This document shows, piece after piece, positions 1 through 32,814 of a stretch of DNA of 64,000 nt (position 1 is its first letter; every line of letters starts with the position of its first letter). Under the pieces are notes generated by a model. It made no database searches. It was not told the origin of the DNA and saw only the letters and a program-made list of their open reading frames with translations. The stretch spans positions 124,001 to 188,000 of the forward strand of contig BQFW01000012.1 in NCBI GenBank assembly GCA_020891255.1, written 5' to 3'. The position numbers were made by a program, and so were the translations under genes. This DNA comes from Entomortierella parvispora E1425. Taxonomy: Eukaryota; Fungi; Mortierellomycota.

Positions 1-2081
1 CGGGTGGAAGGATGCGATTCCGGCTGTGGTTCTAGAGTGGGGTGAGAGCAGGATAGCACAAAAGATGCGAGATTGGTTAGAACCAAACGATCGAAGAGGC
101 GCCAAAGGGGAAAGAGGGGATGGAGAAGAGCCTCAATGAGGTTGCAGGTGGTCGGAAGAGGGCCGAGTCGGAGAATCAGGCCCGGGCTAGATCACGATGA
201 TGCGATCCTGACTCGCCACTGGCTGTTGACCACACCATGTTGACGTTGACGCACGAGGATGGAGAGACCGACTGACACAGAGCGAACGCGAGAACAGCCG
301 AGATGAGCAACGCAAGGTCAAGAAGGACCACAAAGTCAAAGATGCGGTCCTAGGGACCACCCCCCCTCGTTCCCCTCCTCTTTTCTTTTTGCTCTTTTCA
401 TGTCTGGGCATGTACCGAAGACTGGGCATCAACGAGGAACTCGAGGGGGGAGGATGGACAAGCAGAAAAAGGCAGAGAAAGAGAAAGAGAGTCGAGTGGG
501 GCTGTCTTGTCTGCCATTTCCGGTCAGGGGGAAGACAAACGGAGACGAAACTCGTTCTTGCGTCTGTCGCAGGAGGAGCGCTCTCTGCGGAAACAGAGTG
601 GGGGCAGGGGCAGGGGCAGGGGCAGAGTCGAGCAAGATACCCGATCGAAAGCGTAGAGGTAGAGAGGGAGAGAGATTGAGAAAGGTAGGCTCCCAGGTAT
701 CCCACAGCTGCAGCAGCCACAGCGATGCAGCCTTGGCAGCCACGGGAGGATGATTAAGCCGAGGCAAAGGGGACCTCGTACGGAGCCATCTTGTCATCTC
801 CTTCAGCCAAGAGCAAGGGGTTGGTCAACCCAGTGGTTTCTGAGAGCCGTTTGATCGAAGAACCTCCTCGTCGTCGCCACGACCGCCACTGCCACCACCA
901 CCATCACTGCCACCACCCAGTTCCTGACATGCACACAGACACGCACGCACGCACGCACGCTCAGGCACAGAACAATGGAAACAGGGTACGTCTGAGGTGC
1001 GTAATATGAATCGAAAAAAGGAGTCAGGGGACGCAGGGGAGGAAGAAGGGCGTTTGGATGACTGATTGTGAAGAAATGCAGGGCCACTATGCCCAAACAA
1101 GGTACGAACGAACGACGGACATGACAGATAATAGATGGATAGACACTCTCAAACAAGGCACCAGCGCGCCACAAGGGCCTACAGGGTTGAATGGACCCAC
1201 GTCAGGTCCACGAAACAACGGTCATCTCTCTTTGACCAAGTACTGGCAACAAGAGCGACTTTACGACTGATGCCTGTTACTGCAGACACACATAAGTACG
1301 CACACTCGGCGGACAAAAGGTCAAGCGCGTAGAGAGCTTGTCGCCATCAGAGTCGATGGCGCAAAGCAGAAAAGAGCAGGGTACGATAACGAACAAAGAG
1401 TGAAGAAAGGGAGGCTGTACCTTTGCTGCAGACGAAGGCGTTTGTCGGGCGGAAGAGGAAGACCCAGCAGTGGCAGGCGCAGCCAGTGTTTTCGGGAGAG
1501 GGGTTGCAAAGAAGAAAAAAGTGGGGTCTTGCCAGAGGGATGGATGGATGAAGAGGCGATGGAGGGAGAGTAAGGATGTGAGTTTGATTCGATGGATGGA
1601 TGGATGGATGGATGGATGGATGGAAGGGATGGGAAGGGATGAATGAAGAGGCGACAGACAGGGGGGGGATGGTGGCAAAGGGCAAAGGAATAAGGGAATA
1701 AGGGAATGAGAAAAGAGGATGAGGAAAGAGAAAAAGAGGAAAAGAGAACCCCACACAAAGACGACGACAGCGACTCGAAGAGACCGAGACCACGACCCGG
1801 GGGGGGAGTGGGGGGAGAACCCAGTCCGATTGTGGATCCTCTCCAGTCCAGACCAGAGCTGTCACCTCACTCTCTGCAGTCAGGTCCGTCCTGTCAGCCA
1901 GCCCTCCCAGTCGAGTCGAGTCGGGCCGAGAAAAGAGGAAGAAGAAAAAAAAAAGAGCGGCGAAGTAGGTACAGTGCAGGGAAGAGAGTGGATGATGACG
2001 GAGATTCAGTTCGTCAGTGACTGGTTCGTGGGTCTGTTCTGTCATCATCAGCATCATCATCATCTGTTGCTTTTGTGTGTG

Positions 2082-2112
<31 letters not shown>

Positions 2113-2457
2113 GAATATGATAGGGTTCATTCATTTTGGATTTCATTTGATCAGTTGTCTCTTTATTCCCGTGCGATTGGATGGAGGATGGAGAGGGTGT
2201 GATTCTGGATCCGTTGCAGACCCTCCTCTATCCTATCCAGGGTTGCCCTCCTCTATCCCTCCCTGGTCTCTCTCTTTCACCCTCTCCGATGTGTTCAGTT
2301 GACACCTCTGGCGGATCAGTGATCCAGCTCGCCTTGTTGTGTGCACAGCCCGGGTGACCTCTCCAGTCTCGCCCCATCGTCATCGTCGTTTGTTTGTTTG
2401 TTTGTTTGTTTGTTTGACTTTTTCTTATTCTCTCTTTCTCGTTCTCTCTTTCTCTCG

Positions 2458-2496
<39 letters not shown>

Positions 2497-3755
2497 CATC
2501 CAGGTCGCAGATCATCTCTCCTTTCCTTCTGTGCTTCCTAGCGGAAAGTTCTCTGATCGCCGCTTGCTGCAGGAGACAGATTCTGAAAAGTTTCTTTTTT
2601 TTATTTTTTATCTTTTATTTTTTATTTTTATTTTTTTCGGATCCTGGATCACTTTTTGACGATCCCCCCACCCCACGCCCCTTTTGTACCTTGCATGTTT
2701 CATTGGGTGGATGGACGCTTTTCTCACAGTCGCAGAAACAACGGACGCTGTGGGACGTTGGTCTTTGTTTCCGTGATGATGCCGATTCACCAGGGACCAG
2801 GCAAAAGACTCCCTTCTTCTTTTCTTCTTGCACTTAATCTTTGATCCAGGACAGAGAACGGGTGCCTTGCTACTTTGCTACCTCTTGCTTGATCTCAAGA
2901 CCACCCAGTCAGTGATCCAGTCAAGTGTCCACGGCCAAGGATGGACCTTTTGACCACAAATAAAGACTCTTGCCTTGCGCATGTGTCGATCGCTCAAAAT
3001 AAAATCAAATTCCAGGCAATAGATATCTGAGTCTAGCAAAGGCAGACTAAATGGATACAAGTCGGTTGCAATGATGAGCCACTGTTCTCATGTGGAAACC
3101 GTCAACTGCGTGGTGTGCGTGGAATGAGGGCTCCAGTGACAAGAAGGTCGAATTTGTCAACCATCACAGGCAAATCCTAGATCAGGCAGGGTAGAGCCGC
3201 CACATATCAGAAGACGGGATTTTCGGGACTCCATGGCCCAGTCGCGACTGTCAAGATCAGGAAGCAAGGTGTATCCTTTACCTGTAATAGAGCCACAGAG
3301 CCATTCCAACTATCGCCCACTCCGTGCAAAGAAGTGCTCCCCTTTTCCACTTGTCGTGGCGTAGAACCTTTTTTAAGATAAAAAACCAAGTCCTCTTTTT
3401 TGTTTAGATCTATCTGGCATCCTGCATTCGTTGTGACATGCACCGGAAAGTGTCGGGTCTTTTCTATGAACATCTCGAGTCAGACTCTGTAATCTATATA
3501 AGACACATTCTTGATTCATCCTAATCCTAGTTATGATCCTTTGACCATCACATACCAATTTGACCTTGCCAATATTACCATATTAAAAAAAGGTTCCTTC
3601 CAGTTTCGCAACTCCTTCTGATGTAGACCTACTTGCACTGTCTGCAGCTCTTTTTTTTCTTTTTAGGAGCAGAAAACTTCAAGCCCATCTGTCATTTCCC
3701 CACCCAACGTTTATTGTCCCGCCGCATTCATCTCTCCGAACCATTATTCGCCACT

Positions 3756-4221
3756 ATGGTAAGCGACAAGAGATTTCACTCATCGGCAGATATTTCTTTC
3801 TTTTTTCTTTAACGCATTCCTTTTTGCTCTGTCTGACAACCAGCCTTTTCAGAATCATATCAGCAAAAACTCTGTTGTATTCTTGGTTTTGTGCACTCCT
3901 TTCATGTTCGTTTCCCTGTTCACCACTATCAAGGGTCAATTCACTGGTTCCGATACCAGTATCCTCTCGCGAAACCTCAGCCCATTCCTCGTGAACTGCG
4001 TCTTGAGCTCGAATGGCGCCTACGAGAAGTTTTATACTTGCGTTCAGGAAGGTGTGAGCGAGGACGACAAGGCCCATGCCCGTTGGGACGGGTGTCAAGC
4101 AACTTGTGTGATAACAGCCGAAAGGTGTTGCGCGGCTGGCGGCTTTAATCTTCATAACTGTGAAAAGGGCAAATCGCTTTGTTATAGCGAGTATCTCAGT
4201 TGTGTTGTTGAATGTCATTGA
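3756..4221 (+). CDS. Small secreted cysteine-rich protein (124 aa; join 3756-3758, 3853-4221)
   Basis: ATG is followed directly by a GTAAGC donor, and the acceptor TTTTCAG at 3852 is in frame with ORF 3883..4221. The N-terminus MNHISKNSVVFLVLCTPFMFVSLFTTIKG looks like a signal peptide, and the mature part has 10 Cys (CQATC, RCC, CVVEC). Confidence 0.75.
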
Positions 4222-5509
4222 GGTGCTTGACTGTGAATGTTGTGTGATCCATCTTCGCAAACAGAGCCAACATCATTCATAACGTACCTGTTAGAAAAAA
4301 CGAGTGTTTCCATCCATTGTAGAATAGTTTTCGTAATACGATTAAAGAGTAGCAACTCGAGAAGAGAATGGCCTGGCGGGAGAGTGTGTCAGCCCAATGG
4401 ACAGTGTCATAATCTGCGGACCATCCGACTTTCCTCAAAAGGTCAACTCAACAAATATGGAACAGAAGGGGTCAGAGCCATGGTTCAAAAGTGCAAAGAC
4501 GCTTGCGAATCCGCGTATACACCCAACCTTCAATTGCGATCACTCACCCAGCTGTCAAACACCCCGAGGGTCGCGACGCGACGCCCGTGCTTTGCGTTCC
4601 ATTGTTCCCGCCGTCGTGTTCCAGGGATGTTCTTTCCGCGCAACGGGACTTTTTCGTTCCTTCCTCTTTTGACAATCCGCCTTGGTTGAACCCCGTTGGT
4701 GTGATCCTGACTTTGGTCCTGGTACCATCACTTGCAGAGGGCATCTCACTTTTGCGAATCTGAAAAGAGGCTGAAGTACTTCTCTGAATTTTGCCTAGGA
4801 TTTATAACATGCACCGCTAGCTCCAGCTTCGTCCAACGCGACACTCTCTACGCGTCGGGGTCCCTTGACCCGGTGCACACCTGTATCAGGTGGCCATTGA
4901 CTTACGCTTGGAATGCCGGCAAGTTCGCGGGGATAACCCTTTTCTAGTAAGATTGTCAGATCGTCAGTCAGTCAGCCAAAAAAAAGATAGCGAGCTTATG
5001 GTCAATCTGTCCAGGAATGAGGACACCATACGGAGGCTGAATCTCTTGGCAGCCTTTACTGTCGATCCAATACCAAAGCAAAAGCGGCATGGCAACAGAG
5101 GCTAAAAAATAAAAAATAAAAAAAAGACATTCATCCTACATCACACCCTGGAAGGACAGAAAAGGTTATCATGACTGAAAGATTGAAAGAGGTCTTTATT
5201 CTGGACGTCTACAAGCCTGTCGGAGAGAAAGAGATGGACCATCGCCCTTTACTTTTGGGAGACGTTTGGATATGGTCCCCAGACCGGAGGAGGACCCATG
5301 ACAACCAGAGGGAGTAACTGGAAAAACAAATAGGAGAGAAATAAATAAGAACAAAACAAAAAAGTCCTTGATGTAAAAAAACATCATTGGGGACTATGGA
5401 AGCAAAACCCCAAGCAAACTTATGATGGCCCATAAAAGCTCTTTTTTTTTTTTTTTTTTTTTTTTTGAAGTGACATTTTTTTGCAGATCGTGAACATCCC
5501 AATGCCAGG

Positions 5510-6454
5510 CTAGCAACTTACAGGTGCAGTAGGCACTGGCTGTGCTGGCGCTTTACGCTTGCGGCGTTTGCGCCTGGGAGCCGAAGAGATGTCGTTGTTA
5601 CCTTGTTCAAGGGTTTCTTTTTTTTCAAGGTCATACTCTTGCGTGTTGTTGTTGTTGTTGCCACCGCGCCCACGATATCCACGATATCCACGAGGGTAGC
5701 GAGAAGAAAAGGTGCCCACAGCACCAGGGGAAGACGACTTTTTATCGGGAGTGTGCATTCTTTTACGAGAAGCGACTGTCCCATCGCCGTTTGAAGAATC
5801 CCCACAACAACAACGACGGCAATCGTCACAATGGGCCGCCTTGGCAAAGGGACCCGGGATGAGTTCGAGGCAATTCAAGAATTGCGAGATGGATGAAAAC
5901 CCATTCCGAACAGAGTAGCCGAGCTGCATCCCAAAGAGGACCAGATGCACCATCTGGTCTTGGAATGCTTGGCTCAAGTAACCGAGGACGCGAAGCTCGT
6001 CGTCCTGGATACAATAGATCTGCAAGATCTCACGGTATCGTAATACAAAATCACGAAAAGTTTCATTTGCTTGAAGATGCACCTGTTCCAAGTTCTCAAT
6101 GTCTTTCCTATGTTCATACCAATGCATGGTGTGCGAGATAAAGAGTTCTTCAATGCGGTCCCAAGAAGCGCCCGGCTCCTTCTCCAGGTCCTTTGACAGG
6201 ACGAACTCGATGTTGATGTCCAGGATGGCCATCAGGAGCAAACGGTAGCCCTCGGGTTCAAAGTGGGATCCAAGGGCTGCCTGGGCGTGTTTTTTGAAAT
6301 GATAGAAAAATTCTCGGGGGTGGGACATGATATTGTGATAGTCATCATTGTACGGTCCCTGGTACAGGTCTCCTCTTCTTTCTCGCGTCCTCAAGAACCG
6401 TGGGCACTCCTCTTGAATGCGGATCTCGCAATTGGAGGTGTCCAGTCCATACAT
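5510..6454 (-). CDS. Retrotransposon Gag (capsid)-like protein 1, stand-alone; probably has an extra 3' exon (5317-5249)
   Basis: Intact 314-aa ORF from ATG 6454. The segment SWDRIEELFISHT...LEQVHLQANETFRDFVLRYREIL fits the Retrotrans_gag/MHR pattern (W..L...F...L..L.Q...E....F..R). It is roughly half identical by eye to the neighbouring ORF over ~190 aa and has an RG-rich, Arg-rich tail. Confidence 0.75.
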   Translation of the reverse strand: MYGLDTSNCEIRIQEECPRFLRTRERRGDLYQGPYNDDYHNIMSHPREFFYHFKKHAQAALGSHFEPEGYRLLLMAILDINIEFVLSKDLEKEPGASWDRIEELFISHTMHWYEHRKDIENLEQVHLQANETFRDFVLRYREILQIYCIQDDELRVLGYLSQAFQDQMVHLVLFGMQLGYSVRNGFSSISQFLNCLELIPGPFAKAAHCDDCRRCCCGDSSNGDGTVASRKRMHTPDKKSSSPGAVGTFSSRYPRGYRGYRGRGGNNNNNTQEYDLEKKETLEQGNNDISSAPRRKRRKRKAPAQPVPTAPVSC

Positions 6455-7326
6455 TGTGGGGCGGTGATAGTGATGGTGAAAAGGAAGGAAAACGGCGTGT
6501 CTGAATTGGAAGGCCGAGATCTTGGGTCGTGGCGGGTAGATCGGGACGGAATGGATGTTGGGGACTGAAGATGGTTGTGTTCCTGAGATCAATGTGTGTG
6601 TGACTTTAGAATGTAAGGAAATGGGAAATCAATGGATGACGAGAGGAGATCCTTGACAAATCGTGGGGGAGTTGTGTGGTGCCAGGGGAGGCAGCACTGG
6701 CAAGGTGGAGAGGGAGAAGGATGGTGGTTTGTCGAAAAGAGAAAGGAGAACAGAGAAGCAGTAGACGGGATGGTCTGCGTGAGATCGTCGGTGGCTTATA
6801 TTCAGATCGTGCGGCCCAAAACATACGTCCCATGGTGGAGCCCAAAATACCAGGATCTATTACCTTGGAGACACAGAATAGTACATCATGCATGGTAAAG
6901 TGCAAGAGGGGGGAACAATGGACAAAACAGGCATCGATGATATGAACAGACAATAAAGTACTCATACTTCATAACAGCATGAGAAGAGACAGAGGGAGAG
7001 GGAGAGGAAGGGTAGGGTGTCACCATCACAAAGATGGGCTAGTTTTATTTTGGCTGCTTTCAAGTCTTCCAGAGTTAGGATATAGTAACCCATCCCTGTT
7101 GAGGAGACCAATGCAGTCGCGATCCTGGACTTGATGATAGTCCAAAGACAGTAATTGGAGAAAAAAGGAAACCAATATGAACAATAAAAAAAAAAGGGGG
7201 GCCAGAAAAGCCCAGCAACAGCAGATGCCACATCTTTCTTTGAGGAAGAAACATTTCAACGATCTGTCAAAAAACTCCCTTTGCAGCATCTGCGATGTCA
7301 TTCGAGTACATTGACTCGCTTATCAG

Positions 7327-8631
7327 TTAGTCACTACGGCCGCGGTTGCGGTTGCGGCGTCTTTTGCGCCTGTTAGTAGTCGTAGCAGCACTTTCGCTTT
7401 TACCTCTTTCGGCAGATTCAATGTTGTTACCTGGCGCGGGTGGTTCTTTTCCACCTCGACCTTCATTTTCAGGCACATTCTGGCTTCGTTGGCCACACTC
7501 AAAGCAAATTGGACGCCGTTCCGTGCCGTATTCGCAATGAGCCGTACCACCCCCTCTCTGCAGTACACGTTGGCAACGATGAGGAGGAAGAGTGGATGGG
7601 CAAGACGTTCGTAGAGCTCTCTTTTTCTCCTCTTTCGAGAAGCCCTCCCGTCTTTTTTTCAAATCCCTGTCACGGTCTTTACCGCGGTCCCCCTTGTCGT
7701 AAAAGGGACCAGGGATGCGTTCAAGGCAGTCCAAGAACTGTGCAATAGAGATGAATCCATCCCGCACCGGATACCCACGCTGCAGTCCAAAGACCACCAG
7801 GTACACCATTTGCTCCTCAAATGCCTCGTACAGGTACCCGAGCACACCACGGTCATGGTCCTCCACACGGTACATCTCCACGATCTCACGGTACCGCTCC
7901 ACAAACTGACGAAAACTCTCTTGGGTCTCGATCCTCAAACGACTCTTGGGCTCCAGATCCCGCCTATCCTTCACATGGTCGCCCCACGTCATGGTGGTCG
8001 AAATGAAAATCGCCTCCATCCGCTCCCACGACAATGCGCCCTGCTCCCGCCTCAGGCCTTCAGAGACGGCGTACTGAAGGTCGTCCTCGCGAATGGCCAG
8101 GACAAGCAAACGGGCGTGGCCGTCGGACGCAAACAAGTCTCCCAGAGCCTCTTGGGCGTGCTTTTTGAAATGATAAAAGAACTCGCGTGGATGGGTCCAT
8201 ATCTGGAGCCCCTTCTGGCCGCCCCCGGCAAGGGTCCGGCAGAACCGAGGACAATCCTCTCGAAGGCGGATGGTGCCATGCGCGGTCGAGAGGGAGGCTC
8301 GGCTGGCCTCGGTCACAGACTGGGCCGGAGGCAAGAAGGGGCTCTGGGCGTCCGTTGCAGGCGTAGTGGCGGCGATGGGCGAGAGGACGCAGGGCAAGAG
8401 GGAGCGGGGCGGAGGAATCGGATGGAGCATGGCGTCGGCCAAAGAATGGATAGGGTCTCCGGGTTTCATCTTGTCCTGGCACTTCAGAATAGAAAGAGAT
8501 GGGATGAGATATGATGGAAGAGCAGAAAGAGTCTTGTCGAACGCTGGAGAGTGGAGGCTGTCAGCAAAAGTGTTGGCGGTGGTGGTGGAGGTGGAGGTGG
8601 TGGTGGAGGTGGAGGAGAAGGAGAAGGACAT
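7327..8631 (-). CDS. Retrotransposon Gag (capsid)-like protein 2 with vestigial CCHC zinc knuckle
   Basis: Intact 434-aa ORF from ATG 8631, with a TATA-like CTATATA about 120 bp upstream. It contains SWERMEAIFIS...ETQESFRQFVERYREIV (Gag MHR-like), CFECGQRS and a basic C-terminus NRRKRRRNRNRGR. Confidence 0.75.
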   Translation of the reverse strand: MSFSFSSTSTTTSTSTTTANTFADSLHSPAFDKTLSALPSYLIPSLSILKCQDKMKPGDPIHSLADAMLHPIPPPRSLLPCVLSPIAATTPATDAQSPFLPPAQSVTEASRASLSTAHGTIRLREDCPRFCRTLAGGGQKGLQIWTHPREFFYHFKKHAQEALGDLFASDGHARLLVLAIREDDLQYAVSEGLRREQGALSWERMEAIFISTTMTWGDHVKDRRDLEPKSRLRIETQESFRQFVERYREIVEMYRVEDHDRGVLGYLYEAFEEQMVYLVVFGLQRGYPVRDGFISIAQFLDCLERIPGPFYDKGDRGKDRDRDLKKRREGFSKEEKKRALRTSCPSTLPPHRCQRVLQRGGGTAHCEYGTERRPICFECGQRSQNVPENEGRGGKEPPAPGNNIESAERGKSESAATTTNRRKRRRNRNRGRSD

Positions 8632-8925
8632 GGAAAATGGTGGGAATAGGGAAAAGAAAAGAGAACAGCAGAAAGGATTGATTTTCTTGGCCAGTTTTAT
8701 TCCTTTTTTTTCAGAGCTGGAACAAATGGGCTCTTTGGCTCGGGGTATATAGGCAGGTTTCATCAAGTGTGGTTCAGTGTCTGCATGGGCAGCGAGAACA
8801 TCAAGAGCTGAGCCGGTTCTTCATAAAGGTAATAATGTACAGGATATATGTTTATTTTTGGGGGAACGAAAAAAAAAGAGAATGATGTTGCAAACGCGAA
8901 AGAGTCAAAGAGTCAAGGATCGAAT

Positions 8926-11900
8926 CTACAACCAGCTATTCAGCTGGACTGGTGCCGCGCCCGCTATGGCCGCCGCTGCTGTCGAGGCCGCGCTGTTGGT
9001 CAGCAAAGACGAATTGGACGAAAAGGAAGCTGTGGTTGTCAAGGGCGCACCCCCTGCCACCGCCGCCGCTGCTACGGTGGCTGTCGTAGGTCCAGCCTCA
9101 CTTGCCTTGCAGTTGGCCCTTAGCGGCTCCTCAGTCGACAGAGGCGAAGCCATACCCGTGGACGATTTGGAAGGAAACATGGGGTCCATCGGAGATGGTT
9201 CACATGGATGCAAGAAAGGCACAAACACCTGCTGCGCTGGGTGGTACACATGCTCTACTGGCCCTTGTCCCTGTCCTTGCATGGCCAATTGCTGCTGTTG
9301 AACCAATTGCTGTTGCAACTGTTGCTGGTAGATGTGTTGCTGTTGCTTTTGCTGCTGTTGAAACAATAGTTGCTGCTGATGATGATGAGCCGCGTAGATC
9401 GAAGGTGGGTGAATATGCTCTGCAAGGGCAGAACTCATAGTATTGACCGCTGCAGAGGCCGCCGCCACCGCCGCTGCCGCACCTGCGGCCATGGCGGCCG
9501 CAATCGGACTTTGAGAACCGTGGGCCGCATGACCATCCGGGGAAAGAGAAGGAGGAGTAGAAGCAGTAGTGGAACAGCCGTTCAAAAAGGCTGGGACCGA
9601 AGCCGAAGACGTGATTGTACCCGACGAGTACGAGGCCATGGTTAAAGGCACAGACGTGAGCACCATGGGTCCGGGCCCGGGTCCTGGAAGACTATTGACA
9701 CTGCCGTTGTGGTAGCTGGCCGCAAGCGAGGACGATGAATTGGACTTGCCTAGGATGACAGGGGCACTCACCAAATGTTGGCCTGTAGAGGCGGTAGTGT
9801 TGGCCGGGGTGGAAGTCGAGGTGGTAGCGCAACCTGTTGTGGCAAAGGCTGATGCACAAGTCGGCATGGAAGGAAGCGTCAGGTTCGTTGTCGAGGCTGT
9901 CAAGGACGCGGTGGTGGAGGTGGTTGTGGTCGTCGAGGACGACTTGATGACGCCACCTCCAGCCTTTGAACTCTCCTCCTGCAGCGAGCCGCCACGAATC
10001 AATGCCAATCCTCGCAACGCAGCCGGTGACAACTCCACGTCTCGTTTTGGAACCAGTGTCGCTGCCTTCATCGGAGTCAAGGAGCCGTTCGCGTTGCTAC
10101 CAATAGGTGCTGACACATGGCCAGCAGAGACCATAGCCTCCACCGTAGAAGTGACCATGATTGCATCCGAAGGATCAAGTCCTTTGGTGACCATGGTTCC
10201 CTCTGGAGGAGGCACATATGCGTGTGTGCTCGCCACAGCGTCGCCAATGACACAGTAATGACGGACCATCTCCACCAGATCCCGCTGCATTAATGGCTTT
10301 GTCACGTATCGCTCCATGCCCGAGTTGAGGCAGGCCTTGCGGGCCGTTTCCTGAATATCAGCCGAAACTGCCACAACAGGCAATCGAGGCACAGGTCCCT
10401 TGACCTCTGCCGCATGCTCCTTCTCCAATGCTCTAATTTGCTGAGTTGCTTGAACACCATCGCCTATTGCAAAAAACAATATATTCATTAGTTTTTTTTT
10501 TTTCTTATTTCAGCATTGCCCCACCTGTCAAAACCAAAAATCAAATACTTACAGTTCGGCATATGATGATCAAAAAAGCCCAGCGTAAAGTACCCTCTCG
10601 GATGCGACTTGAACAAGGCCAACGCATCCACACCATCGTTCGCACACGAGATCACCAGCCCAAACATGGCCAGCTGCTTGGACAGCACCTTTTGCGCAAT
10701 CTCATTGTCCTCTGCCAACAGGATCCGCATGCCCGTGATCCGCGCCGCCTCCTCCCGCGACAATGAAATCTCGCTCGCTTCATCTGTCACCAACTTGGAC
10801 GAGGTTTTGCTGGGCTTGGGGGAATTGGATTTCAACCGTCCGCCTGTGCCACTGCCGCCGTTCGCCATGTTGGCAAGCGAAGGCGATTTGGATTTCCTCA
10901 AGAAACTCACAGGTGGTGTCAGCGCTGGCTGAGGGGATGCGGTAGGCGTCAGCTCCAAATGGCCATTTTCCTTTGGATCCTTGTCTCCCGTCTCCACATC
11001 CGCGGCCGCTAGCAACGAACTGGTCGATTTGGAAAGGGAGATGGCAACAGGTTGTGCGATTTCACGCTCCAGAACCGTGACTACCTCTCCTGTTCCTGCT
11101 CCTGCTCCTTCTCCTTTTCCACTTGCGGCTTTGCCCGATGACTCTGTCGCCCCACCCTGTTGAGTCTGACTAATGGTCGCCTGCTCCAAAGATCGGCTCA
11201 GGAATTGAGATCCACTGTCTTCCTTTTGAAGATCAGGTCGCGAAGGGACAGACTCTGTGGAAGAGGAGGCTCCGGGGTTTGAGGCCACCTCCTTTCCTAG
11301 AGCACCTTCCAAAGACGACAACATGGAGAGCGAAGGACTGCGGGTCATGCTGGTGGGTGAAAGCGTGGCCGAGGACGTGATCGAGTTGGTGGGTGAAGAA
11401 ATAGGAGATCCCAAGGCCGTCGCATTCGAAGCCGTTGGACTAGATGGCGCCACAGAAGGTGTTGCACCTGCTGCACTGGTTCCTGCTGCTGTTCCTGCTG
11501 CTGCTCCTGCAACATTGGTCGCCACTGAGCACTTTTTTGCAGAATCATCCAAAATCTCGACAAACGCCCGCAAAAGCTTCAAACGGCGAATGGGTTTCGA
11601 GATGCAGGTAATGCGGAGACTGTTGAGTTTTTCGGGACTCAGACCTGGAACTTCGCTGCCCATCAAGGTCCCGCCCACAGAAGGTCCCGAGGGTGAAGAG
11701 CCACTGTTTTCGACGCGGAGTGAGATTGATTGACTGAGCATCGGTCGTCTCTTGACGGCCAACGAGGAGGTTGAAGGGGGATGTTGAAGGGACTGGGCTC
11801 GTTTGATAATGTCGGTCGCTGGGGTATACAGGAGCACGAAATGGACATTGTTCAACTCGGGGCGCGCCTTCAACTCCAACAATGTCTCGTGTTGAGGATC

Positions 11901-14900
11901 GTATTTCGGGAAATCCCAGCAGACGAAATCAAACCGGAATCCGTTCGCCACCGATTCTTCCAGTCGACTGACGGCCGTTGAGGGCAGGTTGGCCACCTCT
12001 GTGTTGCAATCGACCAAGTACGACTGCAAGGACTTGATGGTGGTCTCGCTCGTGGAGGCAATCAAAATGCGAGGGGTCCCCAGGGTGCGGGTGATGCGCT
12101 TGATCTCCTTGGTAGAATCGCCCACTTCGGTCTCTGAAAAACTGCCTACGGTGGCCTCGGGCAAGTTGCTCTTCTCGCACTGAATCACGAACCAGAATTT
12201 GGAGCCCTTGTCCCTGTCAGAGTTCAAACCGATACGACCCTTCATCAACCGGACGAGCTGCAAGCAAATGGACAGACCCAATCCAGATCCGCCATACGAT
12301 CGAGTCGCACTGCCGTCGACCTGCGAAAAGGGCGAGAACAACATGGCCTGCTCCTCTGGACTGATACCAATGCCCGTGTCCGTAACTGAAATCATCAACT
12401 TGATGGACGACTCGCTCAAGGGCTCTGGTGACGAGAACCGACCCGAGTTGGGGGGTCGAATCTCGGATTGACATTGTCCGCCTCCGTTCTTCTCGTGTCG
12501 GAAATAAAACTTGTCATCATCGTCATCAAACATGCCCGCTGACGGTGTCGAGATCAAATCCGTGTCCCGATCCAGCACTTTGCACTCGACCAACACATGG
12601 CCCGAATGCGTGAATTTGATGGCGTTGCCCACCAGGTTCAACAGGATCTGTTTGAGTCGGTTGCAGTCTCCAATCAAAATATCGGGCACATCACTGTTTT
12701 TGCAAAACGCGACCTCTAATGACTTTTTGAATGCCAGAGGTTTGACAATCTCTTCCACTTCCTCAAACACCTCTTCCAGGTCGAACGGGGATGCCTCCAG
12801 AGTGACCTTGTCGGCTTCCAGTTTTGAAAAGTCCAAGAGGTCGTCAATGATCATGAGCAGTTTTTCGCAACTGTCCTTGGCCGTCTCTACACACTCTTTT
12901 TGTTCTTCGTCCAAAGAAGAGTATCCCAGCAGAGTCAACATTCCATGGAATCCAGAGAATGGTCTATAATGATAACAAAAAAAAAGAATAAGCTTCCTTT
13001 CTGAAAACATAGCCAGACAACTTGAAGCAGATCCAACCATATGCGTACGTTCTTAGCTCGTGACTCATGTTGGCCAAAAAGTTGGATTTTTTGTGGAGCT
13101 CGGCCTTTTGCGCGAGGTAAAGATCATCTAGAGAAAGACAAAAGAAACGGCAATGAGTATAAGCAAGCTCATTCCATGGAGAGGAGCTGATGGGAAGGTC
13201 CGATAAAGGGCATAGTTCCTAGCTTACCGATATCGATCGTGACACCGATCCATTTGAGAATCGCTCCACTGTGGTTCAATACAGGGATGGCGCGAGAGAG
13301 ATGCCAGCGATAAACGCCATCATAGCGCATCAGCCTAAACTCGCAATCCTTGTAGACGCCCGTCTTGTAACTTTGCGAAACCTCCTTTTGGAATGAAGCC
13401 ACATCGTCCGGATGCATGGCGCTGATCCAGCGGTCACTCGTCCGTGTGTCTCCAGGCAGCCCTGTGAAATCAAACCAAGACCGTGACAAATATTGTCGAC
13501 TCGCCACATCATCTCGCTCTGCTGCCCAAACAAAACAAGGCAGTGCCTCCATCCATGAAAAGACCTCGTGCTCGTTCTAAATTGCCAAAAAATTAAAAAA
13601 GAATTTTGCAGGGTCAGTGTTTTTGTAATAATTCCCCCACTCTTCAAAATTGATTCCGGGATTCACGACGAGGTGGTGTTGAGCATTCGTACCTTTTGGA
13701 TCCTGGCAATAGTATCTTCAAGGAAACGATTCCGTTGCGTCGCCAAAGACAATTGCTTCTCCAATCCTGCAATCTTTTCACATTGCAACAGTGAGCTGGC
13801 CAGTTTTTGACAAAACAGAATCAACATGTCCTGATCCCGCTTGGAGAAATAAAACCGTGGGTGGAGGTGGTGAAGATACAAAGCACCCACCAAGGTCGAT
13901 GTGGATGAAGGCGCAGATGAGGATCCAGAAGTGCAAGTGCGCTTTCCAGAGGTCAGTGATGAAGTAGGTGCAGCCAAGATGATGGGCACACAGGCAATCG
14001 TGGGCAATTGAGAACGACTGCCCACGGCTGTTGAAAAGATGTGCTCTTTTGTGTCGAGGGCTTTGCGGACAAGGACTGGCATATGATCCCGTCTCTCTGA
14101 CAAATCGGTCCATGAAAGAGCCGACTGTGTTGTTCCCGGTTGGTACTTGTCCTCGATAATAGCCCAGGTGCCTCCATTGGGCAGGTGATCATCCTTTTGC
14201 CACAGAATAATGGCCATCTCCTCTGGTGGATGAACGACCAAAACATTGTCCAGGGCCTGAGAGATGGCCGGCAACATTTCTTGTAGATTGGTGATATGAC
14301 TGAGCGACAAGACCGACTCCAAGACAAACGCGCGATCTTCCGGTGACAGCCCCTCGTGCGGATGTGAAATCGAGGCCGATCTCCTGGATCCCGCGTCCGG
14401 GTCCTGACTCGAGGTTGATTGAATGGAAACTGTTGAATTAGTGGGGGACGTTGGGCGGGGCATACTGGATACTGAGGTATAGGAAGAAGAAAGAGCCGGC
14501 AGTGACAAGGGCGGTTTCGCTGCGGACGAAATAGGCATTCCATTTTCCGAAGATGTCCTGGTGTGGGCCTGGCCGGTGCGTTTAAAGAGAGGATATCCAG
14601 TCAGTAAGCAAATCATCCACGTTGCCCCATCTTCCTCATGGTGACAGGGAACAAAAGTCTAGGAGTCTGTGCTCTGTCGACTTTTTTTTTTTTCTTTCTT
14701 ACATGGAGCTCAATGTCCCGTTTGAGTGCATCCTGCTCCTGGTCTCGGATCAGCGTTAATTCTTTTCTGACCTGGATCATGCTCAGAAACCGATCTTTTG
14801 AGCTCTATGAAATCGTAAAATAGAAACAGGGTGCGGGCTGTGAGTATTGTGACAATAGAGTTGGCAGTTTCCTTGTCCAACAATGAACAGCCACTCTACC

Positions 14901-16974
14901 TTGGCCACCATGCGCTGGATAATGCTAGCAAGACGTGCTGGTGTTGTGGGCAGATGGGCCCCCCGCACCGCCGTTGAACCGTTTCCCGTGGCCATCGAGT
15001 TGAGTTTTTCATTCATGGAAGGAGGCGCCGCTGCAAGGTCCTCGGGCTGGAGCGTAGTATGGCTGGTGAGAAGGTAATAAAACATGACACCTATCGTGGA
15101 TCATGGATGCAAAATGAAATGGGTGGTCCCCATCCATTAGCCACTGGAAATGAAGATGAGAGCACGGTCTCTATTCCGTGGAGCGCTGGGCTTGGATGTC
15201 TGTTTTTTCATTTCATTTCTCAAGGGCCAAGTATCATTGGACTGGCGTGTCTGCAAGGCGGACCGTGAGGGCACAAGGTAAATGTGCGCCCGTTCCCTTT
15301 TTCGTTCTTACCGAGAGCATAGATGTCAATCTGCACAGGGAGGACGCATCCTGGTGGCGAGTGCAGCTCCTACGGTAGAAAAAAAAGAGTTGTCAGCATT
15401 GGGCCTTTTCAGAGAAGACATGCACAGAGCACAATTTTCGTAGGGATAGACAGCACATGCTTTGGTGTTTGCAACAACGTCTGTTGTCGTTCCCGTTGTT
15501 GTTGTCCCCCTCGATTTTTTTCCCTCTTCTACCCCCCCAACGGTCCTGCTCTCATGGATGCTGTAATGTGTGGCCACTGTTCCTCTCTCTCTCTTTTTTT
15601 TTTTTTTTGCGTAATTGTGTTCATTCTTCCTTGCGTTATCCTTTGGCACGGTCCGCCACAACCCCCGACGGTCAATTTGCGCGGGCGCGAGTATGTGCCC
15701 TGCCCAGCTTTCTTTCCAGGCGTGGTGTGGATAGGAAAACAGGGTGCGCCATGTTTTTCTTTGTGGCACGCCGGTCAGTCCGTCCTGTTGGAGCATTCTC
15801 CTTTGTCCACTCGAATGATCGAGTCGTCATTGTGATGATGTCCTTGTTGTCCAAGTGGAGTTTAGGGGGGAGGAAGGGGAAGGAAGGAAAGGAGAGGGAG
15901 GTGGTGAAAAAGACATGGACTCACCTGTGGTACATGAAGAAGGAAATGTTTCTTCAACACCAAAGGTTGAGAGGACCCCTGTCCTCCTGGTGAGGACGAG
16001 ACTGTAGAGGCAAGTGTCGGTGCAGATGCGGACGATGAAGAGGAAGAAGGGGGCGTGGACAAGGGACTCTGTGCGCCAGCAGGCGAGGACGAAGAAGAAG
16101 AAGAAGAAGAGGGAAGGAGGGATCGTTTGATGCGGGCGACACGCGCAGCGATCGCGTCGTGAATGACTGTGCTTCCATGACTCGTGGTGGTACTATAAGG
16201 CTGCAAATTAGCGTCGGACGGGGAAAAGAGCGTCGGGTCAGCAAGGGAACCGGCGGTGCAGTAGGGAGTCGAGTAGTTGGCATTAGTATGCGTATGCGTG
16301 TCCAGAGTGAAAGCATTGGGCGAGGATGGTGCGAGTGGATGGATTGAAGGAGCGGCTGTTGTGCTGTTATTGCCGTTGTTGTTGGCTGTAGAGGAAGGGG
16401 AAGAGGAAGAGGAGGCGACAGCATTGGCGGTGGCAGTGATATGCGAGGAGGACAAGGCCGACGACGCCGTTGCAGCCGAGGAGGTGCATGATGTTTGGGT
16501 ATGATGGGCGTGGTGGTCGCGAAGTCCTTTCCTGGCGGGGCTGTCTGTAGGCTCGGCGGTCTTGTCGCCAAGGCCGAGATGTGTACAGTCGAGAACAAGG
16601 GAGTAGCGCCTCTGTTTGCGTTTGGACGCGTTTGTGGTCTTTGCGAGGGCACCCCGGTCTAGGGTCAGCTGGCTGGGGCTGGTGTGGTTGTCTCTACGAC
16701 TGGGATGGGTCTGAAAATGCTTTGGTCTGTCGTCGGTCCTTGATATGCTTGGGGAGGAGGCAAGGGTATCTGAAGTAGAGGAAGTAGAAGAGGAGGTCGA
16801 GGTGGGAGGGGTGACCGTCTTCAAGGAAGACGAGTCTTCCCATTGGAACGAGGTTGGACAGAGTTGACCATGGATGAGTCCGTTCTGATGCAGTGTCTCG
16901 AGCAAGACCGAGGCCTCGATAGAAAAGTCGAGGAACTTTGCCATGTCAAAGTTGTGTGTCTGCTGTTGCTGCAT
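8926..16974 (-). CDS. Hybrid histidine kinase (degenerate S/T-kinase remnant - GAF - PAS/PAC - HisKA - HATPase - pseudo-REC - REC - low-complexity tail), about 8 exons, roughly 2,200 aa
   Basis: H-box KKSNFLANMSHELRT|PFSG (split by an intron near 13.0 kb), N-box NLVGNAIKFT, G1 DTGIG, G2 GGSGLGL. REC: ILLAEDN...FFDHHMP...VSA...TKPL. PAS: WISAMHPDD...EFRLMRYDGVYRWHLSRAIP. GAF: IACVPII...LVGALYL...FSKRDQDML. GT-AG junctions join the ORFs in frame. Confidence 0.92.
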
Positions 16975-17168
16975 GATGACGACAAGGAGGGAGGAGGGAC
17001 GAGGGAAGAGGGAAGGGAGGGAAGAGGAAAGGAGGAGAGGGGGGGGCAGTGAAAGGGAGGAGGAGGGGTGATGTTGCAGCAAAGAGTGCAGGGCAACTAC
17101 TCTACTGATGGGAGTGGATGGATGAGGGGAATGAAGAAGAAGAAGAAGAAGAAGGAGGAGGGAAGAGA

Positions 17169-17172
<4 letters not shown>

Positions 17173-17218
<46 letters not shown>
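17173..17218. repeat. (GA)n microsatellite
   Basis: Long dinucleotide run seen directly in the sequence. Confidence 0.95.
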
Positions 17219-17223
<5 letters not shown>

Positions 17224-17676
17224 AGAGAAGGGAAGGAACGGAAGGGAGGAGAGAAGAGAGAAGAGAGAAAAAAGGGACGACAGGGACGACAGAGGGACGA
17301 CAGGGAAGGGACGAAAGGGAAAAAGAGTTTTGATGGGGATAGAGGACAGAGAGTAGAGAGAGAGATACAGTATATATGAGAGCGGTGGTATGGTGCGAGA
17401 GAGTGAAGACAGAGTGAAGAGAGGGAGTCAAGGAAGAGAGCAAAGAAAAGAAAGAGTGAAGAAAGAAAGAGTGAAGAAAGAAAGACACGCGAGGAATGGA
17501 TGAATGAATGAAGATGAATAAAGAATGAAGAATGAATGAAGATGAATGAATGAAAGAGAAGAAAAGTGAACCGCGACATGCGACATGCCATGTGCCAATG
17601 TCGCGTCTTTTTGTTCACTCTTGTCGGTCTCTCTTTCTGTCACTCTCTTTCTCGCAGGGACAGGGACAGAGGGACG

Positions 17677-17680
<4 letters not shown>

Positions 17681-17737
<57 letters not shown>
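17681..17737. repeat. (TG)n microsatellite
   Basis: About 28 TG units, within a 1.9-kb intergenic region that also has (CCTT)n, (CT)n and poly-T runs. Confidence 0.95.
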
Positions 17738-17740
<3 letters not shown>

Positions 17741-19120
17741 AACGTGTGTGTGTGAAGATCTCTTTCTGTTTCCTTTTCCCTCTTTTTTTTTTTTTTTTTT
17801 TTTTTCTCCTTTCCTTCCTTCCTTCCTTCCTTCCTTCTACCTTCTGTTTCTGTAGTGGGTCTCTCTCTTTCTCTCTCTTTCTCTCTCTCTCTCTGGAGGA
17901 ACACGGTATCACCATGAGTTCATCCCCTCCTTCTTCCTTCCTTCCTTCCTTCCTTCCTTCCTTCCTTCACCGCTCCTTTTTCTGTCTTCTTGTTGGGGTA
18001 CCCCCCAACCTCCCTTCCCTTCCTTCCACCCTTCAACCTCTTTGGACTGGCCTCCGTTCCCTTTTGACTCGCTCCTATCCTCTCTCTTTGTCTTCTCTCC
18101 TTTTCCTCCCTCTGGCCGTTCTCCTTCCTTCTCCTTGGCTCTTGATGTTTGTTTGTTGTTTTCTAGTCTCTTTTTTTTTTTTTTTTTTCTTTTTTTCTCG
18201 TTTCTAATCTTTTCCCGGTATATTTTTATCCACCACACCTTGTCCCTTCTTCCTTTTCAATCTTCAGATCCCGTCTATCTATCCGTTCGTTCTATCCGCG
18301 TCGTCGCGGCTCGTCTCGTCTGTTGCGTGCTTGTTTCCCTTGAATCATTTCCCTCCTTTTTTTGTATATCCTCTCCCTGTGTGCAACCCCTCTCTCTTTC
18401 TCTCTCTTCTCCTTCTCTTGCTCTCCTCATCATCCTTTTTTATTTCGTTTTTACTTCCGATGACTTGACCGGGTGCTCTCAATATTATTATTTCTCTCTC
18501 CTCTTTCACTCTCCTCCCATACACACACACACCCCCGATCTGCGCACAAAAATCTCGGTTGCAGGAGATTCTCCTTGGGAAGATCTCTCACAGACCCATT
18601 CCGTTCCTTTTTTTTTTTTTTTTTTTTGGGCCTGTGCCCACCCCGCCCTTTTCTGGCCATTTATTTTGTTCCTACCTTCCTTCCTTTCCCCTTGGTTTTT
18701 GGCTATTGTCATCCTAGTTGTCAGCGCAGAGCAAACATCTCTATTCTTTTCTCGAGGGATAAGGGATGACCTTCCTCTCCCGTTTGGCCGATCACTGCGC
18801 CCATTGTCAATTGTCAATTGTCAATTGGGTCAAAAAAAAAAAAAAAAAACACTATTTTTCTCGGATCCGTTGATTTTTTTTTCATGGACTACAGTAGCGT
18901 GTTTTGGGGGAGCGCGCCTTTAATTACAATGGTACTTTTCAAGGGCGATCCCTTATGATTCAGTCCCATGATCGGACTTTTTTTCTCTCTGTCTGTCTGT
19001 CTGCCGGTTTGTCTGTCTGTGTCAAAGGGTATTTTCTTCATTCCTTCATGGCTCGTTCCTAATCTCTTTTTTTGTTCCTCTTGCTCTCGTCCCATCGTTG
19101 TCTCTCCCTCTGACTGAACT

Positions 19121-22100
19121 TTATATCGCCTTGGCCTTGTTGGTAGCATCGTGTACAGTCTCCCGGGCTTGCTGTTCAGGTGGAGAATGCAGCTCATGAG
19201 CTGGGTACCTCTGTCCCGGCACTAACTGCGGAGGATCCCCCTCGTCCAATTTTTCAGGCTTGATCAATATCCGAGATGGAGGCTGAGGAGGTGATGGCAA
19301 CAAACTCTCTGGTAATGAACTGGGCCATGAGGATGTTTGTTGTTGTTGTGTTGGCGGCAGTGGTGGTGGTTGTTCCACGACCTCACTCCTTTGACCATCC
19401 GTAGATCGATGTACGTCATGCTGTGCTACCCACTGTCGAACTTGGTCCTCCAACCCCTTTTCCTTGAGGACCCGTTGTAAGGCCCTAAAGTGAAGATAGT
19501 CTTCTCGGTCCGCCGCACTTGTCAAGTGACTCAACACGGAATCTTGAACATTTTGCTGTTCCACCAAGGACGACACAGCTGTACCATCGCACGCCTATTT
19601 GTTGTTATTGTTGTTGATGTTGTTGATGTGGTTGATGTTGTTGTTATTGTCGATGACGATGACAGGATCGTGCGAATTTCAGAATATGAAGAGAGAGAAA
19701 AAAAAGAGAAAGAGACAAAATAACCTGCAGTTAGAATCAGGTCCAGTCCATGCAAAACAATTAAACAAACGATTGAGGCCCACTCCAAGGCCTTCCTCCA
19801 AAGAGTGTCGTCTGTGTTCACTTACAATTGCTGCTGCCGCAAGAATGTCCAGCATGCTGGCGTTGGATCCAAAGGTCCCTTCTTCTTCCTCTGTTTCCAT
19901 TGCTGTCAATTTCGATTCTGCCACGTGTTCCAGGCGTTGTTGTTGTTGTTGTTGTTGTTGTTGTTCTTGTTGTCGCAGTAGTTGTTCCTGTGACCGAACA
20001 CTGCATGGGCCAAGATGGTAAACAAAAACGGAAAAGAAAAAAAAGTCAACAAACTGTACAGCTTCCTTGGACAAGACTCTCTCGACGACATTATTTCCTT
20101 GGTCCTTTCTTACCTCTCGCACTTTTGGAAAAAGTTGAGCTTGATACTCCTTTCTGGGATCCTGTACACAACGCCACTCGCGTCCATCATCTCGACTGCC
20201 TTGATGGTCGATTTCTTGTCCCCTTCCAAAGACGGTGGCGGTGATGGTTCTTCAATAATCTCAATATCGCCATTGTTGGCCGCATACGGATCCGTCACTT
20301 TGATGGCCACCGCATCCCGTCTTTTCCTCCGACGTGGCTATTCATTTTTTTTTTTTTTTTTTTTTTGAGTGTGGGTCAAGAAAAAAAAATGGAAATTAGC
20401 TAATATTATGGAAAATTGCCAACCGTTCCACACAATTTCATAGAGAGCAGAAATGCAATAAGAGAAAAAAAAGGTGGCGCCGAAGGGGTTCGAAAGTATC
20501 GACCACAATGACGTCAAAGATACCCCTTCCTCCCATTCCCCCCCAGCACGAAATCTATGTTCTCCGCAAACACGGACAGTCCCCGAAAGAGACTTACCAA
20601 CAGATGATCGACATGGTTAGGACACATCCACTTGCGCGTACTGGGCGGAGGCGCCGCCATTGGAGGATCCAAGCAGTCCAGGTGCCAGTGCAGCGGGCAA
20701 TGATCACAGCTAGCCATCATTCGATTTTGAACCGCGCTCTTGTGGCAGTGAAAACATAGCCGAATCTCGCCCTTTTTGTCCCGAATTTTCAATGCTTCTA
20801 ATGTAGACGCAGACATGCCAAGCGCTTCGGCCTCTGAAGCGGCTGCACTCCCTGAAGGGGCTGCAGGTGGCTCGGGTTTGAAGTCCATGCTGTCCACATA
20901 TTCACCATCGCTATTGGTCTCCACTGCTCGATCATATTATCATATTCGCAAAAAAAAAAAAAAAAAAAAAAAAAGAGATAAAAGGTTAGAGAGTGCCACA
21001 AAGATCAAATAAGCGAAGGGGTCAATGTAGAAGAGATCGATACAACAATTCAGAGCCATGAACGCAAAAAAAAGAATCCAAAAAAAAGAGAAACAAGATC
21101 AAGGGGCCAGAACGTAGAGCGGGGATAAGGTTCAAAGGGTCGTGGAGGACACAGAGTAAAGGTCGGGGCATCATGGTATCCTTGGACCTTTGCCTGCCTG
21201 CCTCTCTCGCAACGTCCCTTGCAGCTCTGTCAATTGAGAAGGCCCCTTGTGATGGCCGGATAGAACCATAGGAACGTAGGCAGAGAAGCATTCCAAAGAA
21301 AGAAAAAACAAAAAAAAAAGGGCTCCACTGCTTGCTTGCTTGCTTACCATTCTTGTAAAACTTCCTCATATCCGCTGGCAGTGCAAACGACCGTGGGTTC
21401 ATACAGTTGAGATTGTCCAGAAGCTGCTTAAAGATTCCATTCGGACTGGGCACTGGCGGATGCTACATTGGCATCGTCACGTCATACCATATCAAGGTCC
21501 AGAGTAAAAGTCAGAACGATGGTTGTTAGTCGACAGTTTCTCTTCTTTTTTGTTTCAACTAGACTTTGGAGTGCCGTGCCAGATCAAGAACGACAATAGA
21601 GGAAGCCCCCTAAAGGAAGCACTCTCGGAGCTATTCAAAAAGATCTCCAACACTTGCTCCCCCTGCCGCCGTCAGAGAATAAGGGTACCAAGAGGTCCAA
21701 GAACCCTCCTTTTGTACAAATCTACTTACCAGGCGCGCCTCGCACTCGTTGCAGTGCCATTCGTCCGGAAGGTTGTCTGGATCCAGCGGAGGATGGCAAC
21801 ACGAAAAGTGAAAGGCTCTGGGGCAGGTGTCGCAGCAGATAAACTGCCCCAGTCCTAGACAAGTCTCGCAATAGTCGTTATTATTCTATGAAGGTTTTAA
21901 AGCCAATATCGCAGACCGAAAGAAATGACGGGCAGAAAAGGGACAGAAACGGTACGAGTGAGTATCCATGAAAACCTCCGTGTTGATGGGCCCTATCCGT
22001 GTCCTTTTTTTTCCTTGATTATCATATATCATCCTGGGTATCTTCATTTTAGCAAAAAAGATACAGCCATCTATTTTGCTCCGTGCAGTCAGAACTTTGC

Positions 22101-28557: not shown

Positions 28558-28638
28558 GTCAACATGGCCGAGCGGTTAAGGCGTGAGACTAGAAATCTCA
28601 TGGGTTCTCCCGCGCAGGTTCAAATCCTGCTGTTGACG
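28558..28638 (+). tRNA. tRNA-Ser: tRNA-Ser (anticodon AGA)
   Basis: Acceptor stem GTCAACA/TGTTGAC, D-arm GCCGAGCGGTTAAGGC, anticodon arm TGAGA-CTAGAAA-TCTCA, long variable arm, T-arm GCAGG-TTCAAAT-CCTGC, downstream T-run. Confidence 0.97.
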
Positions 28639-32733: not shown

Positions 32734-32814
32734 CGTCAACAGCAGGATTTGAACCTGCGCGGGAGAACCCATGAGATTTCTAGTCTCACGCCTTAACCGC
32801 TCGGCCATGTTGAC
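32734..32814 (-). tRNA. tRNA-Ser: tRNA-Ser (anticodon AGA), identical copy in inverted orientation
   Basis: Exact reverse complement of 28558-28638. Confidence 0.97.

Follow-up and report, generated by a model that had tools for sequence, protein, structure and literature searches.

A 64,000-nt stretch of the Entomortierella parvispora E1425 genome (assembly GCA_020891255.1, contig BQFW01000012.1, positions 124,001 to 188,000 of the forward strand; hereafter the window, whose numbering is used throughout) carries two adjacent open reading frames, ORF1 and ORF2. Homology and the genomic context of their relatives identify them as tandem gag-only paralogues derived from the Gag protein of a Mortierellaceae chromovirus (Ty3/gypsy, Metaviridae). 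The explanation that best accounts for all of the evidence, to which we give a probability of roughly 55%, is that the pair are host-maintained gag-only genes, which would most likely act against the assembly of a related chromovirus. The features of the locus, in which L008 and L006 denote metagenome contigs carrying an intact chromovirus and the closest homologue of the pair, respectively, are:

5510..6454, minus strand: ORF1, a gag-only gene that encodes 314 aa when read from its first ATG (6454), with the stop codon at 5510-5512
5846..6427, minus strand: ORF1 capsid (CA) core, two helical lobes, 46% identical to ORF2 and 42% to the L008 chromovirus Gag
6281..6322, minus strand: the invariant 14-aa block HPREFFYHFKKHAQ in ORF1
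5552..5575, minus strand: ORF1 Arg/Lys-rich C-terminal block RRKRRKRK, preceded by Cys-rich and RGG-like stretches; homologous block in ORF2 and L006
7327..8469, minus strand: ORF2, a gag-only gene that encodes 380 aa when read from its ATG at 8469
7702..8268, minus strand: ORF2 CA core, from homology to ORF1 and L008 Gag and from an AlphaFold2 (AF2) model
8152..8193, minus strand: the invariant 14-aa block HPREFFYHFKKHAQ in ORF2
7465..7539, minus strand: nucleocapsid (NC) zinc-knuckle relic in ORF2, HCE...CFECGQRSQNVPEN, from alignment to chromovirus NC
7330..7374, minus strand: ORF2 Arg-rich C-terminal tail NRRKRRRNRNRGRSD
6593..7326, no strand assigned: spacer between ORF1 and ORF2, with no supported ORF and no repeat in common with the flanks

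Both ORFs lie intact on the minus strand and share a core of ~190 aa, as a first-pass annotation of the letters of the window had proposed. BLASTP aligns their products with 46% identity across 247 aa (E=2e-66), the DNA is ~65% identical across ~500 nt, and these are the only two copies within the window. The full open frame of ORF1 (5510-6592, minus strand) begins with a TTG codon at 6592, immediately upstream of which there is a stop, and holds no ATG earlier than 6454. The open frame of ORF2 (7327-8766, minus strand) offers candidate ATGs at 8763, 8631 and 8469, the first two of which would add a Ser/Thr/Pro-rich N-terminus. Homology of this extension to the region upstream of ORF1, suggested by a long tblastn high-scoring segment pair, was not significant for the proteins when this part was compared by itself, which left only a marginal CT-rich DNA match. 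Codon comparison confirmed that HPREFFYHFKKHAQ is identical in both proteins even though 8 of its 14 codons differ, every change being synonymous.

The common core of ORF1 and ORF2 is the capsid domain of a Ty3/gypsy (chromovirus) Gag. A profile built from the two cores and searched against 1.84 billion representative proteins retrieved 31 relatives from independent assemblies (132-674 aa long, E down to 1e-37), and those bearing source names are from Mortierellaceae (Linnemannia, Haplosporangium). Many of the 31 end in two CCHC zinc knuckles, and one runs on into a DTGA protease. Genomic context decides the matter: a 983-aa ORF for protease (PR), reverse transcriptase (RT), RNase H and integrase (IN) lies directly downstream of relative P0024, pol is immediately downstream of P0014 (Linnemannia hyalina), and a short match to the start of pol comes after P0002. 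On metagenome contig L008, an intact single-ORF chromovirus is assembled in circularly permuted form. Its ORF (>1400 aa) encodes, in order, a coiled coil, CA, two CCHC knuckles, an aspartic protease, RT, RNase H, integrase and a chromodomain; along ~200 aa, this CA shares 42-45% identity with ORF1 and ORF2. Since the L008 pol is 99.9-100% identical on three metagenome contigs (L008; L004 9560-12508; L009 980-3700), the element must have been active recently, its host being some Mortierellaceae-like fungus of soil. Other searches yielded less: a single-sequence search of a 90%-cluster protein database with ORF2 found no homologue, a pattern scan of metagenomes found three loci only, and the core profile had no match in a contig collection of bacteria and archaea only, which is uninformative. 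Sequence searches of the PDB with two-sequence and 34-sequence profiles returned, for CA, only zinc-knuckle matches and noise.

One of the contigs sharing the L008 pol shows its own irregularities. On the ENA contig L004, the interval 12300-19563 has two fungal chromovirus copies joined to bacterial-type genes (pheS, rplT, rpmI, infC, radical SAM), with the pol ORF cut at the fungal/bacterial junction, and L004 is most likely a chimeric metagenome assembly. The gag of the L004 chromovirus copy is split over three frames.

The rest of the element is missing from the window; the first-pass annotation had noted no protease, RT, RNase H, integrase or LTR in the flanks. Searches by tblastn with the 1400-aa L008 polyprotein found no PR, RT, RNase H or IN across the 64 kb at a threshold of 1e-3 and only noise in 1-9000 at E<=10; no LTR-like (long terminal repeat-like) non-coding direct repeats were found in 1-14000, and L008 non-coding DNA has no match in the window. 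The N-terminal coiled coil of the element is absent from both proteins, and a regular-expression scan found no intact CX2CX4HX4C (CCHC) motif near ORF1 or ORF2 in any frame. What is left of the zinc-knuckle region in ORF2 is the relic HCE...CFECGQRSQNVPEN, which aligns to HCEKCGDNYTHDTNGCKTCAKCGKKGHVASEC of chromovirus NC with the zinc ligands replaced (His to Gln, Cys to Asn), and in ORF1 almost nothing is left. ORF1, ORF2 and L006 have an Arg-rich block followed shortly by a stop, a feature absent from L008. Hence, by homology and by these searches, ORF1 and ORF2 are gag-only genes with intact ORFs and without the rest of the element. The annotated Arg-rich tails are present in both proteins; the TATA-like elements annotated with them also exist as hexamers (6795-6800, in the spacer, and 8744-8751), and these carry no weight on their own.

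The missing parts bear on the main rival explanation, namely that ORF1 and ORF2 are gag-only non-autonomous retroelement copies or pol-deleted insertions, whose constraint would stem from element-level selection before or between insertions. On this view they came to lie side by side in a lineage-specific stretch that tolerates transposable elements, and they would have decay ahead of them, as is happening to the L006 copy. We regard this as possible but doubtful. A young insertion should show LTRs, and the intact ORFs have no LTRs, pol traces or terminal repeats; moreover, the ~160-450 nt between the stop of the neighbouring kinase gene (8926) and the ORF2 candidate start codons leave no room for a 5' LTR.

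Phylogeny and sequence divergence further separate these two explanations. In a maximum-likelihood tree of 35 family members, ORF1, ORF2 and L006 form a single clade, (ORF2,(ORF1,L006)), with support of 100/99, which is sister to L008 at 99/93. Because of this single clade, one loss of pol followed by gene duplication would be the simplest account of the sequences. All three copies have the same derived truncation and tail, which together with their monophyly argues against this rival, and copies that are adjacent, co-oriented, colinear and synonymously saturated better fit in-place tandem duplication and selection than separate insertion.

Between the CA cores, synonymous differences greatly exceed nonsynonymous ones. 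We used the proportions of nonsynonymous and synonymous differences (pN and pS) and report pN/pS instead of dN/dS, because corrected dS was saturated or undefined. The CA cores of ORF1 and ORF2 gave pN 0.265 and pS 0.67 (Fisher p=3e-16), and those of ORF1 and L006 gave pN 0.22 and pS 0.60 (Fisher p=6e-14), that is, pN/pS of 0.37-0.40 with synonymous sites saturated. Both CA lobes are constrained, the C-lobe more strongly, whereas the divergence between the two C-terminal tails is near neutral (ORF1 against ORF2, pN 0.64 vs pS 0.67). In neutral simulations with 0.3-0.84 substitutions per site, the probability that either ORF stays open was <=3e-4, indicating that selection kept the frames open through most of the divergence. 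Comparison of the sequences thus shows that the CA core was held under purifying selection while synonymous sites became saturated, and an old duplication kept under such selection, as first annotated, agrees with the core pN/pS of ~0.4. Host use of the gag pair is likely. Codon usage does not discriminate, as the third-position G+C content (GC3) of the pair is indistinguishable from that of host genes or of transposable element (TE) gag.

Several results weigh against the reading of ORF1 and ORF2 as host-maintained capsid genes, and those that concern the capsid assignment are considered first. The Pfam family model Retrotrans_gag (PF03732) scores ORF1 and ORF2 at 13-14 bits (E=0.05-0.1), below its cut-off of 24.1, and the assignment therefore rests on relatives and genomic context and not on the Pfam model; ORF1, P0009 and P0014 all match the same section of the Retrotrans_gag profile weakly, and another family member reaches E=8.5e-4. 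The AF2 models are both two-lobed. That of ORF1 has 8 helices over residues 46-198 with a block-mean predicted local distance difference test (pLDDT) score mostly of 84-97, and that of the ORF2 core has 9 helices, in lobes of five and four, with a mean pLDDT of 87.9 and a predicted template-modelling score (pTM) of 0.79. In both, the helix resembling the major homology region (MHR), E-T/S-F-R-x-F-V-x-R-Y-R-E-I, is the start of the C-lobe. For both models Foldseek ranked the PNMA2 capsid at the top (prob 0.69, TM 0.40), with Arc, HIV-1 CA, HML2, MLV and the PEG10 C-terminal domain also among the leading matches; with the ORF2 core as query, these account for most of the best 50, yet no match was significant for either model (best E 0.2, none <0.1). 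The match of these predicted models to a two-lobed capsid fold is therefore suggestive, and homology and context carry the capsid assignment. Foldseek against BFVD with the full-length model gave essentially noise, with a few caulimovirid coat proteins.

Confident fold models nonetheless speak against a chance origin of the frames. That ORF1 and ORF2 are chance open frames or an assembly artefact has next to no likelihood, being refuted by the similarity of the two proteins, by profile matches in independent assemblies and by the significant synonymous excess.

The remaining points against host maintenance concern the position of the pair and the state of its closest relative. For synteny, the anchor is the gene upstream of ORF2, which lies outside the gag pair itself:

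8926..13040, minus strand: 3' part of a hybrid histidine-kinase/response-regulator gene

Orthologues of the kinase were found in Mortierella sp. AD010 and AD032, Gamsiella multidivaricata, Podila epigama and two further assemblies, and on its far side (PHD and DEK_C/SWIB genes) synteny is kept with Gamsiella and AD032. Four relatives have sequence downstream of the orthologous kinase (L011, L012, L013 and L014, comprising Gamsiella multidivaricata, Mortierella sp. AD010, Podila epigama and the fungus of SRR5823416), and in all four nothing gag-like is there, so that presence of the pair at a syntenic locus, on which its status as domesticated had been made to depend, was not borne out among them. 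In three of the four (L011, L013 and L014: Gamsiella, Podila epigama and the SRR5823416 fungus), the position of the gag pair is taken by a gene resembling 2-oxoglutarate (2OG)-Fe(II) oxygenases, which is the ancestral downstream neighbour of the kinase and was not found anywhere in the window. Because relatives carry this other gene there, the gag pair sits in lineage-specific DNA at a synteny break. In addition, the closest homologue of the pair is itself broken. This homologue, which was found in three samples (contigs L002, L003/L007 and L006), is gag-only and 74% identical to ORF1 in DNA; it adjoins a NACHT-WD40 gene, i.e., it occupies another locus, and its reading frame is disrupted ahead of the Arg-rich tail by a 1-nt frameshift and by an in-frame TGA. 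The lesions are identical in the contigs of the three samples, which differ by a few single-nucleotide polymorphisms. The broken copy (L006 380-1095) retains a 132-aa ORF (P0001) whose first residues coincide with the start of the MHR-like helix, so that it comprises the C-lobe alone. No further gag-only member of the clade was found in the databases searched, no related chromovirus was seen in the 64-kb window, and the purifying selection described above could date in part from a mobile-element stage.

Several observations speak for non-autonomous copies or relics: the location of the pair at a synteny break and its absence there from four relatives, a nearest copy broken at an unrelated locus, a narrow distribution, ~5.5 kb of gene-poor, low-complexity DNA beyond ORF1, and other relatives that, wherever their context is readable, are all TE gag followed by pol sequence. 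Absence in the relatives does not, however, refute a host function, since these relatives are distant and the pair may postdate the splits from all four: pS of the kinase between the source and relatives is 0.67-0.85, not below the pS between the two gag genes. From the shared truncation, the retained frames and this distribution we infer that ORF1 and ORF2 probably belong to a young, lineage-restricted, tandemly duplicated and host-maintained family subject to birth-and-death turnover.

A mechanism that would suit host-maintained genes of this kind can be proposed. The genes retain the two-lobed CA of a chromovirus Gag, no longer have its coiled coil, CCHC knuckles, PR, RT, RNase H, IN, chromodomain and LTRs, and end in an Arg-rich tail without counterpart in the L008 element. 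Most likely, their CA lobes would co-assemble with related chromovirus Gag through CA-CA contacts and poison particle assembly, in the manner of Ty1 p22, yeast DRT2, mouse Fv1 and RTL8 (against PEG10), and the Arg-rich tail would give nuclear targeting or unspecific RNA binding; a target chromovirus in the same genome is assumed. A defence-type gene fits better than a conserved cell-biological one because of the narrow distribution, the duplication, the broken relative and the sister relationship to a recently active element. Of the two roles that had been suggested for the pair from the letters alone, dominant-negative restriction of retrotransposons accordingly sits better with the narrow distribution, the birth-and-death turnover, the tandem duplication and the chromovirus sister, and the restricting action itself is suggested by analogy.

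The other suggested role, Arc/PEG10-like RNA transfer, is supported by nothing in the data, and by analogy with known systems interference with chromovirus assembly appears more likely. Host capsids of the Arc/PEG10/PNMA type would package RNA, for which the Arg-rich tail might serve, and carry that RNA from one cell or hypha to another. Such a role would accord with two CA lobes that are both conserved and confidently modelled, with the rank of PNMA2 and Arc capsids as top structural neighbours and with the basic tail, and the lack of a zinc-knuckle NC is no obstacle, Arc being likewise without one. We nevertheless consider it improbable, as there is no cross-taxon conservation, the pair is absent from the syntenic site in relatives, one copy of the lineage is broken, and the tails on which RNA packaging might depend evolve neutrally. 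Still more improbable is the specific proposal that, in an early-diverging fungal lineage, a Ty3/gypsy capsid independently became a pair of host proteins that form particles, be it as an RNA carrier or as a mixed shell of the two paralogues.

Some further features of the locus touch on the extent and origin of the genes. The left border of the feature had been placed at 5249, which the sequence does not support: ORF1 stops at 5510, and reaching 5249 needs a hypothetical splice from GTAAGT. This consensus 5' splice site (5516-5521) overlaps the last codons of ORF1, and a putative splice from it to ~5393 would add a hydrophobic segment (ORF 5209-5502). Such a spliced 3' extension to ~5209-5249 was set aside, because ORF2 and L006 both stop right after the Arg-rich block. 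An A25 run in the sense of the genes (5442-5466) lies ~45 nt past the ORF1 stop, and a processed-retrocopy origin was considered on its account; the A25 and GTAAGT features could be a poly(A) remnant of a retrocopy, a feature of the 3' untranslated region, or nothing. Against a retrocopy sign, A/T homopolymers are frequent in the intergenic DNA of the window and the aligned L006 sequence is merely A-rich. In the spacer, a CT-rich segment (6704-6771) marginally matches 8611-8678 (72% across 71 nt; E=0.003, from a small search of low-complexity sequence). Antisense to ORF2, and within it, runs a 234-aa ORF (7810-8514, plus strand) that nothing supports, homologues included, and that probably arises from the codon composition of the coding strand.

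Elsewhere in the window, the DNA beyond ORF1 (~5.5 kb) is low in complexity and apparently gene-free, with CT microsatellites at 2081-2117 and 2441-2501 and a purine-rich stretch at 1-2000. Three paralogous NAD(P)H-binding (NAD_binding_10) ORFs (29204-30058, minus strand; 37484-38272 and 39100-39894, plus strand) span, together with two opposed tRNA-Ser(AGA) genes (28558-28641, plus strand; 32733-32814, minus strand), ~11 kb. At 58374-58508 a short segment is 53% identical to part of the NACHT-WD40 gene that adjoins the L006 gag copy, namely its NACHT P-loop region; it lies ~50 kb from the gag pair and is not synteny.

Co-option of gag is well documented in animals, and the fungal cases are only Ty1/copia- and Bel-Pao-derived (PMC8321522, PMC10951436); no Ty3/gypsy-derived or Mucoromycota-grade fungal case is reported in this literature (PMC8321522, PMC10951436), and a literature search brought up no additional one. 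A chromovirus-derived, tandem gag-only family in Mortierellaceae would thus be a new addition to the known gag co-options. If the genes are expressed and act on chromoviruses, fungi would have evolved capsid-based self-defence against retroelements more than once, each time out of a different superfamily of elements. The tandem pair and its broken relative would then represent a young case of the birth-and-death phase of domestication, and a means of controlling TEs would become available in the Mortierellaceae, a tractable group of lipid producers. Should both genes be mere relics, the locus is an ordinary retrotransposon footprint.

The nearest known system is the Gag of Mortierellaceae chromoviruses (L008 and the Linnemannia hyalina element at P0014), which has a homologous ~190-aa CA, placed likewise with respect to the zinc knuckles, and the same MHR-like helix (E-[ST]-[FY]-R-x-F-x-x-R-Y) at the start of the C-lobe. 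Unlike these elements, the window genes are without coiled coil, intact CCHC, PR, RT, RNase H, IN, chromodomain and LTR, and they have a derived Arg-rich tail followed by a stop.

The animal genes Arc, dArc1, PEG10, PNMA2 and RTL/SIRH resemble the window genes in their Ty3/gypsy (Metaviridae) Gag origin and in a stand-alone CA of two helical lobes. They differ in having no detectable sequence similarity to the window genes (E ~1 in the PDB profile search), which indicates that a co-option in the window would be independent of the animal genes and in another kingdom. Animal gag genes have also been kept at syntenic loci for tens to hundreds of millions of years, whereas the window genes are absent from the syntenic site in the four relatives. 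Further Gag-derived restriction factors are mouse Fv1 and enJS56A1. RTL8 is reported to act on PEG10 (PMC11684626). Cell-biological co-options such as Arc, PEG10 and Crtg have persisted for long periods of evolution (PMC8321522).

Three fungal gag co-options have been reported, Crtg12 and Crtg13 (Ty1/copia) and Crtg14 (Bel-Pao) (Wang and Han 2021, PMC8321522), which occur in single copy in Dothideomycetes or Tremellomycetes and are defined by synteny above the family level (PMC8321522). Like them, ORF1 and ORF2 are fungal gag-only genes with intact ORFs under purifying selection; in contrast to them, they are Ty3/gypsy-derived, found in Mortierellaceae, arranged in tandem and without synteny in the relatives compared. 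Measured by the co-option criteria of Wang and Han 2021, the pair has the intact gag-only ORF and the purifying selection, and it lacks syntenic orthologues in the four, distant relatives compared.

A closer functional parallel for the proposed interference may be found in Saccharomyces. DRT2 is a domesticated Ty1' gag restriction factor for which restriction has been demonstrated (PMC10951436), and Ty1 p22 is a gag-derived yeast restriction factor that acts on the assembly of the related element (PMC10951436). These proteins are Ty1/copia-derived and comprise the CA C-terminal domain only, whereas the window genes are Ty3/gypsy-derived with both lobes, and restriction, demonstrated for DRT2, is proposed for the window genes. 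The likeness is that in both cases a stand-alone piece of Gag with capsid sequence occurs in a fungus, at young, variable loci and with a narrow distribution, and the 132-aa P0001 of the L006 copy is, like the yeast factors, the C-lobe only.

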